A DNA stretch of 64,000 bases from Octopus bimaculoides (GCF_001194135.2 NC_069000.1:17688476-17752475), one strand, 5' to 3'. Shown: positions 29,753-59,700, counted from the first letter of the stretch. Translations and numbers: made by a program. Notes: a model not told the origin generated them from the letters alone.

Positions 29753-32700
29753 GTAAATATTACATTTCAAGCCATTTCCAAAACTATTCTTTGAACATGA
29801 AAATGTCTCTCGTCCATTAATTCACACTAAATTATGGGCTTTCGTTGTTATTGTTTTTTTTTCTTTATTTCATGGTTTCGGCTGAAATTTTTCTAACAAG
29901 GATGTTAATAGTTATTATGACTGGTTGTCTTAACAAGGAGTAAATACATTAATATATTAATAACATGGAGTAAATATATTAATATAAATTTCCAAAGTTT
30001 TTTTCCCCCCTACAACATCTTTAGATGGTCAGAAAATATTCAGTTTACTAAATAGAAATTAAATATGCCACTTGGTTTCATTACAAAATATGCATTTTCA
30101 GTTATCCAAATGCATGAAGAATCTCTTGCGAACTTTTTAAATTTCTTGCTTTTAGGTTTTATTTGACATAAACATTTAACATTTACCAATTTATCTTATG
30201 ATTGATAAATTCCTAATCTAAATGTTTAACCCACGTTTAGTCTTTTAGAATATTTAATTTTTTTTATTTCCACCGGGTCAAACCCTTTAGTTTTGACCGT
30301 CTTTTGTTTTTTCACGGAAAACAATTATTTCGTTTTCTCCGCATTACGTTTGTAGTTTTTCATTAAAGTAAATAAATATAACTGGTAACAAATTTTGGTA
30401 ACAGAGATCCTATTAGACATAAATTATAATACCATAATTCGGAAATAATTATCTTACAATTGAAACTCGAGAGATTTCGACAAAAGCTGTCGGAATATGG
30501 CCGTTGTTAGTTTCCTAATTATTTGATTTTGCTTTTAGTTTATCCGTTGTTTCTCTGGTTCCTGCATATCTCTTAGATTGTGATCTGTATCTTGTTATTT
30601 ATCAGAACTTTAAGTTTTGCTTCAGATATTTATTTTATACTCTGTCTACATTTACTGTTGGCTATATTGAGCATTGTGTTTGATTAAGTCTGAACATTAT
30701 GAAAACGTTAATCTTCTTGTTGTCTACTTGTATCACATCAATCTTCCATTCCATATAAACATATTGGTAAACTTAGGATTTGATAAGTGATTTTTTTTTG
30801 TTTTTGTTTCCGTTACGTTCTTTTACCAAACAGAACCAACGGCTAAGCCTCTGTGGTTGCTATAAAAGCAGCCAAATCTACTTCAACATCCAACCGTCTT
30901 AAGAGAAAAAAAAATAGAGTTGTTTGCTAGGAGAAATAAGACAGGATGAAATGCTTTCTATCAAAGTTGGTAAACAACGTTTACGAAATTATAAACATGC
31001 GATAATATTCTGCCTGTGTAGATTTTACGTATGTCTTTCGAATTATATCAGTACATACCAATAGATATATGAAAAGGTGTCCTGGAGCCTCAGAAAAACA
31101 TGGGTATTGTTAACAGTTGTTTTGCTCCAGGTCGGCGTGACCGTGCAAGTCTCTGATCAAATACATTCCAGCCATTAAGTGCGTCTATAGAACTACTTTA
31201 TTTAAGGTAATGTCGATAGAAGGAAATTTGTCTATTTCTTGCAGTTTTTTTTCTTTCTTAGCGGTTACCTAAAGGCTCGCTCATCAACTTGTTAATTATC
31301 GTGATGAGCGCCGTTATGTCTTAAGATTTTAGTCGAGTCTTGTCTATCTTAGAGTTATGCCGATAGAAAAGGCCTGAGTGTCACAACTTTCCGATATTCT
31401 AAAATACAAATTACTAGATTTTTCCGGCATCGATTATGTCCCTTTAAATATATATATATTTTTTTCAGTTTAGCGGCAATCAATCGTTTTGAGTCTCAGA
31501 AATGCCATTCGCAACTTGTCATTTGTTCATTAGTTTCCGTAAAAAGTTTTTATTTATTTACTTTGGACGTGTCGAAATGGAAGAGGAAACTAATGGGTGT
31601 ACGTGTGTGTGTGCGCGAGCGCGTTCTGTTTTATGTATTTGTACTCATGGATTTTACATACACAAATGAAGCAGGTAAGAACCGAACCCTAGCTGCCTAA
31701 ATAAATATAGCTGAGAAGGCCAAAATAAACTGTATAACTATAGAGCTATATAACACATAATGTGGTAACTATTCAGTTTAGTGGCATTAAAAAGGTAAAT
31801 AAAAATTAAGGGGGAGATAACTATTAAAGGGACATACAAAAGTCAACATAAATACTGGATATTATTTACTTTGGAACCAATCAGAATGGCACGTGGAAGA
31901 CCAGCGGGACCACAATTCATTGTTCTTGAAATTGAAATCCTCAACCGTGAATCAATATTGGAATATCACCCAATTAGCCTAATGACGAGACACGATTCTT
32001 CACAGTAATTGGCATGGCGTCGACTAATTATGAATTTATACACATGCGAAAATTATAAATTCGCCATGTAGTTATCTGTAATACTACAGTAATTATCTCC
32101 CCCTTAATTTTTATTTACTTGTTAAATATCACTAAGTTGAACAATTACCTATATATATATATATATATATTAGAAGCTGATGCCTTTGAAATTGTTACTG
32201 ACTTTTTGGGACGTACTTTGAATTTAGGTCTTTCAATTTTGTCAATAACCAATCAGCTCGTACCATTTTGTTTGGCGGTAATATATAAACACACACACAC
32301 ACACTCGCTCACAGTGTGTGCATTATGGTCAAGTTGCTCAAGACTAAAGCGAGATAGCTGATGTTATCCTGTAGGTATATTGAGAGATTGTTCTATCCGT
32401 ACTTTTTTTCCCCCCTTGTACAGCGTTCACTCAGATAAGTTTGTCCATTCTGAAGCCTATTATGTCAACGTGTGTGTGTGTGTGTGTGGGGGGTCTACCT
32501 TGAAGCGTTCGCGCGTTGTACTAGAGATTTTCATATCGTACATTTCAACTTTAGGCGGAGGTAAAGAATACGTACACCACCCGTTTACGGCGTAACCAAA
32601 GCCCTAACCCTAAACACCGGGTGTGCGTATTTTTTTACCTTCGCCAAATGGTGTTTGTCATCTTGTCAAGTCATATGCTGCCAGTTAATAACAGTCTAAG

Positions 32701-56700: not shown

Positions 56701-59700
56701 GAGCATTATCTTGGAGCTAAAAGATTTCAGTGATGTGATTGTTTATTTTTAGCATGGCATTGTAGGGTTGTTGTGAGAGACTAGATTTAGCATAAAACGG
56801 GTAGAATACTTGGACTTGGCATGACCAGTTTAAAAGCTAAAGCATTAAATTAGTCTGAAAATATTATTTAACCACTGCATACATACCACCAAATATTCAT
56901 GTCACCTAACCGGCACTTATGCCAGTGCCGCTGGACTGTCTCCTGTGCAGGTGGCATGTAAAAAACACCATTTGAGCATGGCCGTTGCCAGTACTGCTTG
57001 ACTGGTCCTCATGCCGGGGGGGGGGGCATGTAAAAGCACCCACTACACTCTTGGAGTGGTTGACGTTAGGAAGGGCATTCAGCTGTAGAAACTCTGCCAG
57101 ATCAGATTGGAGCCTGGTGCAGCCATCTGGTTCGCCAGTCCTCAGTCAAATCGTCCAACCCATGCTAGCATGGAAAGCGGACGTTAAACGATGATCTACA
57201 CTTCATTTTACAATACCCAACTTTGCTCATGTACTTCCCTCTTAATTCTATTTGAATCAATAAACCATTTATCCAATCAATAGTAACTGTAATGTCTTGT
57301 TACGGTCTTAACTCCCTTGCTAAGGGCTTACTTTACTAATGCACAATAAAAATTAATTATACATCTTACATAGGGCTCATATTAAATCCACTCAAATTCT
57401 ACTGTGATGGACAAAATTAGAAAGTCATCTCATTATTCTTATTCATTTGGGAGCTGGAAAACGAAAACCAACATCAAAATATATGGAATATAAATCTGTA
57501 GTATTAAGTTATGTAAAGGCAAAAGAAAATCATGTATCTTATACATTGCAAAACCTGCAAAATTTTTGCTTAATTTTTGATATCCTCTTGAAAATTTTAA
57601 AATTCAAACGTCCAGTCCTGTAATAACCAAACAAAATATTTTCTAAAATGGGCTTTTCCAAATGCTTATAGTGCATTTACTTGTGTTCAGATTATCTTGA
57701 AAATTGGCATTATTGCAGAAATGTTTTTCTTTTAAATATTAAATTGTCATTTGTGGTAAAAATAATATTGTGCATGGAAGATTGTTAATTTACTGCAGAA
57801 TAATAACTAAAAAAAAATACATCAAAAGAAGAGATGTTAGCTAGTAATAAATTACATGTAATTAGTAATTGACATGGACATATTTTTATTTATTTAATAG
57901 ACTTAATGTCACTAGGACTAAATTATCCACAGTGTTCCCCTCCCTTTTTAAAATGGTTGAGTGTGATTTAAAAACAACTCAGCTGCTATTTCCAGCAAGT
58001 TCAGCAACCATGTAGAGGATATCTCCTTATAGGTTAGATGTCTTAAAAGAGCGAAAGTTGAATTTAACACAACAGGAAGCTCTGGAATGAAGGACTACAT
58101 AAATGTACTGCTGATAAGAAACGGAGAAAGAGTGGCTATACAAGTTATTGTTGTAACATTACTTTCTGGTACACAAGTCACTTACAGTCTCATTAGAAAA
58201 GTAGAGAACAGAGACTGCACAATGAATGAACAAGTGTTGAAAATATTTCAGTTCTGGGTTTTTTATTAATCAGGCAGACAGTTTTGAATTTAATTTCAGA
58301 TATCAGTGATTTATCTGACTTGAAATATGAGAGGGAGCATAATTCCAGATTGGTGTGTGTCTAGACTGTTTTTCTATTTTTCTTACAAAATCAAGTTATT
58401 CAGGCTTAGAATTTACTGGGAATAATGACTCTTTGCATATATAAAGTTGGTACACCTAGAAATAGCTCTGTAGTGTTGTTGTTGTTGGCACTCCGTCACT
58501 TACAACGTCAGGGGTTCCAGTTGATCCGATCAACGGAACAGCCTGCTAGTGAAATTAATGTGCAAGTGGCTGAGCACTCCACAGACACGTGTACCCTTAA
58601 CGTAGTTCTCGGGGAGATTCAGCGTGACACAGTGTGACAAGGCTGACCCTTTGAATTACAGGCACAACAGAAACAGGAAGTAAGACTGAGAGAAAGTTGT
58701 GGTGAAAAAGTACAGCAGGGTTTGCCACCATCCCCTGCTGGAGCCTCGTGGAGCTTTAGGTGTTTTCGCTTAATAAACACTCACAACGCCCGGTCTGGGA
58801 ATCGAAACCGCAATCCTATGACTGAGAGTCCGCTGCCCTAACCACTGGGCCATTGCGCCTCCACAGCTCTGTAGTGTATGGCTTTTACATTAAGCTCAAG
58901 TTTGCATTTGCATAAGTTATATTTGTATGAGCTGTTTGGCCATTTTCATCCATTATGGAACCTATCATCAAAATTATATTTGGTATTTTTTGAGGGCGCA
59001 TGGCTTAGTGGTTAGGGTGTTGCACTCACAATTGTGAAATTGTGGTTTCAATTCCTGGACCAAGTGGTGCATTATGTCCTTGAGCAAAACACTTCATTTC
59101 ATATTACTCTGTGATCACTTTGACACTTGATGTGTGATACACTATGCATCAGTCCAGGCAATGTAGATTTGATGGAGAGTTTGAGTTAATGTACAGCACA
59201 AACATTTGATCACTATAAGCAAATCATTTGTGTAGGTTGTTCAGCAAGAAGTTGCAGAACCATCTTTCTCGGACTACAAAAAACTACCATCATGTTTGGC
59301 ATTTCAAGTTATTTTCTAATGACAGCCTTATGACTTTTCTAATTTCCAGAAGATTTTTTGATGTAATTTTCAAGTAAAGTATTCAAGAGTTAGGATTTTT
59401 TTTAGAAAACCAAGAAAAGGTTCATGTTTGGTTGATGTTAACTGAAACTATAAAACTGTATATTTCTGTTTTAGGGAAACAACCGAGATAAGTGGCAGCC
59501 AAAGAGTTACCAGCTCACTGTACGACATAATGAGCTTTTTCAGAAATATTACCAAGTAAGTGGAGTTGAGCATTTTACTATTTCCCTCACTCTGTCTGTC
59601 TGTCTGTCTATCTATATATATCCCCTCTTTCTGTCTTTGTTGTTTTGAAGCAATTATTATTGATCTTTCTATATAAAAATTTTATGTATATGGAAACTGA

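Follow-up and report, generated by a model that had tools for sequence, protein, structure and literature searches.

A giant intronless midasin gene in the first intron of NSUN2, and a first exon that the two genes appear to share in coleoid cephalopods

How is the messenger RNA (mRNA) of an essential giant protein made when its whole gene lies inside the first intron of another gene, on the same strand? The question is raised by a stretch of 64,000 nucleotides (nt) from Octopus bimaculoides, here called the window, which corresponds base for base, with the same gaps included, to chromosome CM046620.1 of assembly GCA_001194135.2 (window position 28738 is 17,717,213 on the chromosome). A first-pass annotation of this DNA had placed the gene for the ribosome-biogenesis factor midasin (MDN1/Rea1) within the first intron of NSUN2, and had supposed that the two outputs might be coupled or mutually exclusive. 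We found that the two genes are nested as described, that the MDN1 coding sequence (CDS) is a single uninterrupted exon, and that in cuttlefish RNA it is spliced onto the first exon of NSUN2. With a probability of roughly 0.75, we therefore read MDN1 and NSUN2 of the coleoid cephalopods as a single transcription unit with one promoter, one first exon and two fates, a reading that includes the origin of MDN1 as a retrocopy. The main features are as follows, with a slash marking exon-intron boundaries:

29586-29627, plus strand: promoter-proximal block AACATCGCAGTATGGCGTCGCGGCCAACACACGTGGCTTGAT, 42 nt, with TATGGCG at 29596-29602 and an E-box, CACGTG, at 29615-29620
29618-29752, plus strand: exon 1, putatively shared by both genes, 5' end approximate; NSUN2 ATG at 29717, NSUN2 CDS 29717-29752, donor AAG/GTAAAT
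29753-59474, plus strand: NSUN2 intron 1, 29.7 kb, with the whole MDN1 exon inside it
38606-38639, plus strand: MDN1 3' splice region, with a candidate branch point CCCTCAC (A at 38611), the pyrimidine tract TTTATATTGCTACTTAC and AG at 38638-38639
38640-38737, plus strand: MDN1 5' leader, 98 nt, of which the first 27 nt (38640-38666) are AGGCTTTCATGCAGTAGTGTTTGGCCT; mini upstream open reading frame (uORF) ATGCAGTAG
38738-55102, plus strand: MDN1 (midasin/Rea1) CDS, 5,454 codons, intronless; dN/dS 0.12 against O. vulgaris
55103-55400, plus strand: probable MDN1 3' untranslated region (UTR), with AATAAA at 55250 and ATTAAA at 55370 as candidate signals
59475-59555, plus strand: NSUN2 exon 2, acceptor ttttag/GGAAAC, 3' end TACCAA/gtaagt, encoding 27 residues
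61888-61982, plus strand: NSUN2 exon 3
62949-63056, plus strand: NSUN2 exon 4
63857-63962, plus strand: NSUN2 exon 5; the gene runs on past the window end

The host gene is recovered in full once its first exon is included. The coding part of exon 1 at 29717-29752 reads ATG GGC CGC TGC CGT ACA AGA CGA CAT TAC AAT AAG/GTAAAT, which is 12 codons ending in phase 0, and the earlier claim that it joins in frame to the exon at 59475 is borne out by the protein record: exons 1-5, extended by the remaining octopus residues, match RefSeq XP_014789893.1 from O. bimaculoides at 100% identity over 784 amino acids, and CAI9737702.1, the O. vulgaris model, shares its N-terminus with this joined protein. The window exons 1-5 belong to the NSUN2/Trm4 RNA 5-methylcytosine (m5C) methyltransferase. 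Exons 3-5 align with human NSUN2 residues 51-155, and the domains on record for XP_014789893.1 (our protein P0285; PF01189, PF25376 and PF25378) comprise the RsmB-F type S-adenosylmethionine (SAM) methyltransferase core, which is encoded outside the window, and the pre-PUA and PUA domains. An N-terminus of the same length, M-G-R followed by basic residues and placed before NELFxxYY, is also found in NSUN2 of other animals (for example, P0137). In the current GenBank annotation, the NSUN2 CDS starts exactly 9,021 nt 5' of the MDN1 ATG, which is window position 29717, and MDN1 is listed inside it.

A word-indexed protein search with the 142-residue N-terminus of NSUN2 gave no match, and the RefSeq model was found with a composite full-length NSUN2 query, after an exhaustive search of cluster representatives. 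The UniRef entry for NSUN2 of O. bimaculoides is truncated and begins with MEWYPDE. The nesting is already implicit in the public gene models (GenBank, XP_014789893.1 and CAI9737702.1). Our literature search found no paper on the nesting, or on midasin in connection with cephalopods or with an intronless state.

Between NSUN2 exons 1 and 2 lies an uninterrupted open reading frame (ORF) of 5,454 codons on the plus strand, and it is a complete midasin, as the first-pass annotation had stated. Its translation fits the midasin plan of an N-terminal ring of six dynein-like AAA+ modules with their lids, a long linker, an acidic region rich in Asp and Glu, and a C-terminal MIDAS domain (VWA-like, DxSxS). 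The Pfam family AAA_5 matches in seven stretches (E=3e-127), with further matches to AAA_lid_7, AAA_lid_5 and MDN1_4th, and the Rea1/MDN1 structures 6hyp, 5jcs and 6or5 are matched at E=0. At the C-terminal end, 454 residues match the MIDAS-domain structures 6qt8 (E=3e-70) and 6qta, the Pfam matches to VWA and VWA_2 being below or near the cut-offs; the translation also shows the motif LAIDDSSSM and an acidic stretch. The most unusual feature of the locus, on which the first-pass annotation did not remark, is that the CDS has no intron. This holds for all six cephalopod MDN1 loci compared, against an MDN1 gene that spans 129 kb in the abalone Haliotis asinina. All six ORFs are intact, with 5,452-5,500 codons, and the dN/dS ratio between two decapodiforms is 0.10, similar to the value between the two octopuses given above. 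In the O. vulgaris annotation, no gene is listed within the 77.8-kb range of NSUN2, yet an intact MDN1 ORF of 5,453 codons is located there, at positions 23635-39996 of our locus L018 (OX597833.1), so that MDN1 appears to be absent from that annotation.

The evidence on how MDN1 is transcribed comes from larval RNA-seq runs of the cuttlefish Sepia esculenta, several of which are named in PMC9538352 and PMC10571815. We identified 15 Logan contigs from these runs that each contain the whole MDN1 CDS. All 15 open with the same 29 nt, CAAGACGCAACTACAAACGAGATAACAGG, fused directly to the sequence that follows the MDN1 acceptor (AGGCTTTCATGCAG...; AGGCTTTCATGCAGTAGTG), and this opening corresponds to the last 29 nt of NSUN2 exon 1. 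The Sepia NSUN2 mRNA contigs read ...ATGGGCCGCTGCCGAACAAGACGCAACTACAAACGAGATAACAGG/AATGGTAATGAG... and run from the same 29 nt into exon 2 and on into exon 3, whereas genomic or unspliced Sepia contigs carry intron sequence at this point instead (...tattgcttcttgcag). Sepia RNA thereby contains one 5' exon with two alternative splices, which is the pattern of the cholinergic ChAT/VAChT locus. In a second decapodiform, exon 1 is likewise joined to exon 2, with a 5' UTR of 116 nt counted from a conserved GTGGCTT motif.

The identical start of the 15 MDN1 contigs is explained by the assembly. Logan contigs are assembled with k=31, and all MDN1 contigs start where a de Bruijn graph of that k would branch, between ...AGG/AG in MDN1 and ...AGG/AA in NSUN2 exon 2. 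The last common 30-mer consists of the 29 nt and the A that opens both AGGC (MDN1) and AATG (NSUN2 exon 2), and the assembly breaks at this branch. The coupling suggested earlier is thus tighter than was proposed: since MDN1 is spliced onto NSUN2 exon 1 in the cuttlefish, each primary transcript would make either MDN1 or NSUN2, and MDN1 there is more than an independent gene lying in the path of NSUN2 transcription.

The octopus carries the corresponding acceptor. Its 3' splice region reads CCCTCAC and then TTTATATTGCTACTTACAG/AGGCTTTC, 98 nt upstream of the MDN1 ATG, and this region together with the first 27 nt of the MDN1 exon is near-invariant from octopus to cuttlefish in every genome compared, while the remainder of the leader diverges. 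Because the acceptor is conserved, MDN1 needs an upstream exon. A blastn comparison of 29753-38606 with Argonauta and a decapodiform revealed no other conserved block, and so, at that sensitivity, no conserved first exon or promoter of MDN1's own; in Argonauta, just 2.35 kb separate exon 1 from the MDN1 acceptor. Conservation of the acceptor and leader suggests that exon 1 is also used for MDN1 in the octopus. When joined to exon 1, the 27-nt block completes a uORF of 23 codons that ends in RLSCSSVWP, and it also carries a two-codon mini-uORF, ATG-CAG-TAG. The uORF on the MDN1 mRNA would have 23 codons in octopods and 24 in decapodiforms, with its stop 62-82 nt before the MDN1 ATG. Both the start codon in exon 1 and the MDN1 ATG are in a good context (GAGATGG and AGGATGG, respectively). 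The 27-nt block could be a control element for splicing or translation.

The order of exon 1, intronless MDN1 and exon 2 is kept in O. vulgaris, in Argonauta hians and in a decapodiform genome (ENA ERZ21867824). In the latter two, an exon 1 with a GT donor is present upstream of the intronless MDN1 on the same strand, and the degenerate exon-1 pattern is expected to occur by chance 0.03 times per locus. The coordinates are:

Argonauta hians, gap-free locus L002: exon 1 at 7505-7540, 12 codons, followed by /gtaaat; MDN1 at 10001-26503; exon 2 from 28532
Decapodiform ERZ21867824, locus L003, MDN1 69% identical: exon 1 MGRCRNRRSYRRDNR/gtaatt at 4324-4368; MDN1 at 10001-26383; exon 2 at 35342-35415

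The synteny comparison that had been called for in octopods and decapodiforms accordingly finds the nest conserved, in the same order and on the same strand, and the comparison of these genomes places the nested layout across the coleoids. An ankyrin-repeat gene downstream of NSUN2 is a flanking gene common to the compared loci. The genomic NSUN2 locus of Sepia pharaonis holds only the 3' half of the gene and is uninformative on the nest. In seven non-cephalopod molluscs, MDN1 and NSUN2 are located on different chromosomes or scaffolds (the contigs differ in size), whereas in O. sinensis they are on the same 55-Mb chromosome.

Two assembly gaps lie between exon 1 and MDN1, and a misjoin at either of them had been named as a reason to doubt the nest. 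Since CM046620.1 has identical runs of N, the species' own assembly is unable to test the gaps, and other species were used:

33112-33145: assembly gap 1, spanned colinearly by O. vulgaris L018 13482-13565
36796-37367: assembly gap 2, spanned colinearly by O. sinensis L001 ~3814-4323 and by O. vulgaris L018 17375-18417

Window 24430-64000 aligns colinearly, and on a single strand, with the gap-free O. vulgaris chromosome OX597833.1; the first gap corresponds to about 84 nt there, the second lies within about 1 kb, and the second is also bridged in the gap-free O. sinensis. A misjoin is ruled out by this colinearity. The DNA is contiguous across the gaps and the host exons are spliced together in gene models and in decapodiform mRNA contigs, which makes MDN1 a same-strand nested gene in the proper sense.

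The putative promoter element at 29586-29627 is kept in O. vulgaris, in Argonauta, in the decapodiform genome and at the 5' end of the Sepia NSUN2 mRNA contigs; the roles of its motifs are read from sequence and conservation. Decapodiform mRNA contigs start at or upstream of the GTGGCTT motif. The observed/expected ratio of CpG (CpG o/e) is near 1 around exon 1 (28-34 kb) and falls to 0.23-0.47 at 55-59.5 kb, in agreement with the earlier remark that there is no CpG-rich promoter between MDN1 and exon 2. From the MDN1 stop up to exon 2, the comparison with Argonauta and the decapodiform gave no conserved block other than a repeat at 57054-57195.

The transcription unit that we envisage would work as follows. 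The conserved promoter with its E-box would drive a short first exon that bears the NSUN2 start codon. In one fate, the donor of exon 1 would be spliced to the proximal acceptor, 98 nt before the MDN1 ATG, to give an mRNA whose second exon is also its last, about 16.6 kb in length, containing the whole of midasin and ending at a poly(A) site of its own, for which AATAAA at 55250 and ATTAAA at 55370 are candidates. In the other, the polymerase would continue through MDN1 and beyond the poly(A) site of its exon, and the same donor would be joined to exon 2 at 59475, 29.7 kb downstream, so that one product or the other is made per primary transcript. On the MDN1 mRNA, the NSUN2 ATG would open the uORF, and ribosomes would reach the midasin start codon by reinitiation or leaky scanning.

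A bolder version, which we put forward tentatively and consider rather doubtful, is that this is an obligate two-output switch kept throughout coleoid history. A single Myc-type (E-box) promoter would feed both genes, and their ratio would be decided only once transcription is under way, with the proximal MDN1 acceptor and its poly(A) site competing against the distal NSUN2 acceptor. Control would be exerted at the 27-nt element, either by regulating splicing or, via the peptide ...RLSCSSVWP of the conserved uORF, by restraining the translation of midasin, and MDN1, as the replacement of an essential parent, would be among the longest functional retrogenes known.

Several points weigh against a single transcription unit. 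The RNA junctions come from Sepia, and the octopus join of exon 1 to MDN1 is argued from the conservation of the acceptor and leader; moreover, the Logan contigs are short-read de Bruijn assemblies, none of which extends all the way from the start of transcription across exon 1 to MDN1. MDN1 may also have a further start site of its own inside the intron, and non-coding first exons are often poorly conserved. MDN1 of the octopus might thus be an ordinary nested gene transcribed mainly from its own intronic start, through an unconserved non-coding first exon, with the splice from exon 1 to MDN1 being minor or specific to decapodiforms. The zone with a CpG o/e of ~1 reaches about 4 kb past exon 1, to ~34 kb, and could hold a second start site, and mammalian VAChT has specific promoters in addition to the exon that it shares with ChAT (PMC3053374). 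We nevertheless consider two promoters unlikely, given that the conserved acceptor demands some upstream exon, that nothing else is conserved between exon 1 and the acceptor among octopus, Argonauta and the decapodiform, even across the short Argonauta interval, and that the exon 1 junction is present in every one of the Sepia MDN1 contigs. A different objection comes from the O. sinensis RefSeq model of NSUN2, XP_029647246.2 (580 residues), whose first exon has 13 codons (MPKEEMFGCNKLH) and lies at L001 33414-33452, between MDN1 and exon 2. An internal NSUN2 promoter may therefore exist in the octopus, and NSUN2 might even start downstream of MDN1 near 57.8 kb, in which case the exon encoding MGRC would be a 5' exon of MDN1 only and the genes would be in tandem rather than nested. 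An ORF and donor scan of 55103-59474 for an alternative NSUN2 first exon returned just two weak candidates, of which one is the homologue of the O. sinensis exon:

57834-57857, plus strand: weak candidate alternative NSUN2 first exon, MLASNKLH/gtaatt, homologous to exon 1 of the O. sinensis RefSeq model

The sole block in 55103-59474 that is conserved in Argonauta, at 57054-57195, also matches elsewhere in the loci and was dismissed as a repeat.

A tandem arrangement is very improbable. The ATG of the O. sinensis model is not conserved in O. bimaculoides, the CpG o/e at that exon is low, and the region 57834-57857 has no match in the Argonauta or decapodiform genome; the model itself is also C-terminally truncated. 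By contrast, the models of O. bimaculoides and of O. vulgaris, a sister species, start with the 12-residue peptide of exon 1, decapodiform mRNA contigs join exon 1 directly to exon 2, and the N-terminus so formed has the M-G-R-basic character and the length before NELFxxYY that it has in other animals. The O. sinensis-type exon is probably a modelling artefact. The earlier claim that every NSUN2 transcript must read through MDN1 is upheld as to the nesting and the coupling, but its "every" is unproven, as XP_029647246.2 starts downstream of MDN1. An assembly artefact, with exon 1 and MDN1 falsely joined at one of the two gaps that separate them, has practically no chance of being the explanation, because the identical order and strand are seen in gap-free assemblies made independently for O. 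vulgaris, O. sinensis, Argonauta and the decapodiform.

Where the nest came from is a separate part of the single-unit reading. We think it somewhat probable that a full-length retrocopy of MDN1 landed in the sense orientation in intron 1 of NSUN2 in a coleoid ancestor, captured the first exon and promoter of its host, and became an orphan retrogene when the parent was lost; retrocopies located in introns that capture host exons, and the loss of parents, are documented for mammals (PMC4772013). The six intronless cephalopod loci lack the introns of the orthologues, as judged by the 129-kb abalone gene, and no second cephalopod MDN1 was found among the best 120 of 1,023 matches, which contained one MDN1 cluster per cephalopod. 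On the other side, no A-rich or poly(A) tail remnant was seen by eye in the ~1.1 kb that follow the MDN1 stop (55103-56200), in an inspection that did not extend to target-site duplications; a full-length retrocopy of ~17 kb would be unusually long; and the genomes compared are those of coleoids and non-cephalopod molluscs, which date the event only loosely. The missing remnant is not decisive, as both the poly(A) tail and the target-site duplications would be expected to vanish over more than 200 million years. The alternative is intron loss at the original MDN1 locus, for instance when a reverse-transcribed cDNA recombined with the gene, followed by the placement of MDN1 inside NSUN2 through large-scale coleoid rearrangements, or by the recruitment of an upstream exon across it by NSUN2. 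The same missing remnant and the rarity of very long retrocopies would fit this course of events, and coleoid genomes are described as heavily rearranged (PMC13652810). We hold it possible but rather improbable: it needs two independent rare events, the loss of many introns and an exact same-strand placement in a first intron with a usable acceptor, whereas a single retroposition accounts for intron loss, relocation, orientation and exon capture together, by a documented route (PMC4772013).

In the Sepia genomic or unspliced contig, we noted an A18 run with an embedded AATAAA (L009 ~17915-17935), ~300 nt past the stop and exactly at the ends of the RNA contigs, which end 220-350 nt past the MDN1 stop. 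The run may simply belong to a normal A-rich poly(A) region, or it may be the relic of a retrocopy tail, for which it is a weak indication, and the octopus window has no equivalent.

The layout is of a known type, of which MDN1/NSUN2 is an extreme case. In the cholinergic locus (VAChT within intron 1 of ChAT; unc-17/cha-1 in C. elegans), the nested ORF likewise occupies a single exon in its host's first intron, in the same orientation (PMC3053374), alternative splicing connects one 5' exon to either gene, the layout is deeply conserved, and both products act in one pathway, which here would be the translation apparatus, with 60S assembly and tRNA m5C methylation. The MDN1/NSUN2 locus differs in that the shared exon codes for the host, with the NSUN2 ATG, and hence places a uORF on the mRNA of the nested gene; in the length of the nested exon, about 16.6 kb against about 2 kb; and in that the layout is specific to one lineage, the coleoids, while the cholinergic one is pan-metazoan. 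Extra promoters of the nested gene are known for VAChT.

Intronic retrocopies that form chimeras with host exons (Carelli et al. 2016, PMC4772013) and orphan retrogenes (Ciomborowska et al. 2013, PMC3548309) resemble MDN1 in the intronless CDS as opposed to intron-rich orthologues, the same-strand host intron, the splice to a host 5' exon, the CpG-rich host promoter and the strong purifying selection, and may resemble orphan retrogenes also in the absence of a parental copy, of which none was seen among the best 120 of 1,023 matches. MDN1 departs from typical retrogenes in being an essential single-copy ribosome-biogenesis factor with a far larger CDS (16.4 kb), and from the known retrocopies in that its retroposition would have to be deduced without the poly(A) remnant, absent from the stretch inspected. 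At H13/Mcts2 (PMC13309782), the use of an intronic poly(A) site similarly competes with the full-length host mRNA; however, the retrogene there is transcribed from an imprinted promoter of its own and exerts transcriptional interference, whereas here, at least in Sepia, there is a junction to the first exon of the host.

If this reading is correct, a giant essential gene, encoding a motor of roughly 5,500 residues, can be rebuilt from RNA and its regulation ceded to a host gene, and in every coleoid examined MDN1 would be a single exon dependent on the promoter and first exon of another gene. The maturation of pre-60S particles and the m5C34/48 methylation of tRNA would be tied to one promoter and be mutually exclusive per transcript, which would constitute a natural coupling experiment. 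There are also consequences for annotation: the NSUN2 models of O. sinensis and the older ones of O. bimaculoides are N-terminally truncated, and read counts on exon 1 in expression studies will conflate MDN1 and NSUN2.

A few further features of the window were recorded. Compared with O. bimaculoides, O. vulgaris and O. sinensis have insertions of ~3.9-4.3 kb and 3.7-4.1 kb at window 37741 and 55742-55926; they flank the MDN1 exon closely, one upstream and one downstream, and are probably transposable elements. An Rfam scan of the whole window gave no family at threshold, and hence no hosted small nucleolar RNA or known element. On the minus strand at 52260-53331, ORFs of 251 and 160 codons are antisense to the acidic, Asp- and Glu-rich part of MDN1, and are expected by-products of the repetitive coding strand rich in GAA and GAT rather than genes. 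Upstream, window 1-24000 is occupied on the minus strand by a deubiquitinase gene of UCH/USP type (Pfam UCH, E=1.3e-5; exon ~4277-4528), which includes a Ser/Pro-rich exon of 518 codons (ORF 14553-16109, minus strand) without a Pfam match. The same UCH-type neighbour is present in Argonauta (L002 1-1152), and a second zone with a CpG o/e of ~1, at 20-24 kb, may be the promoter of this deubiquitinase gene.

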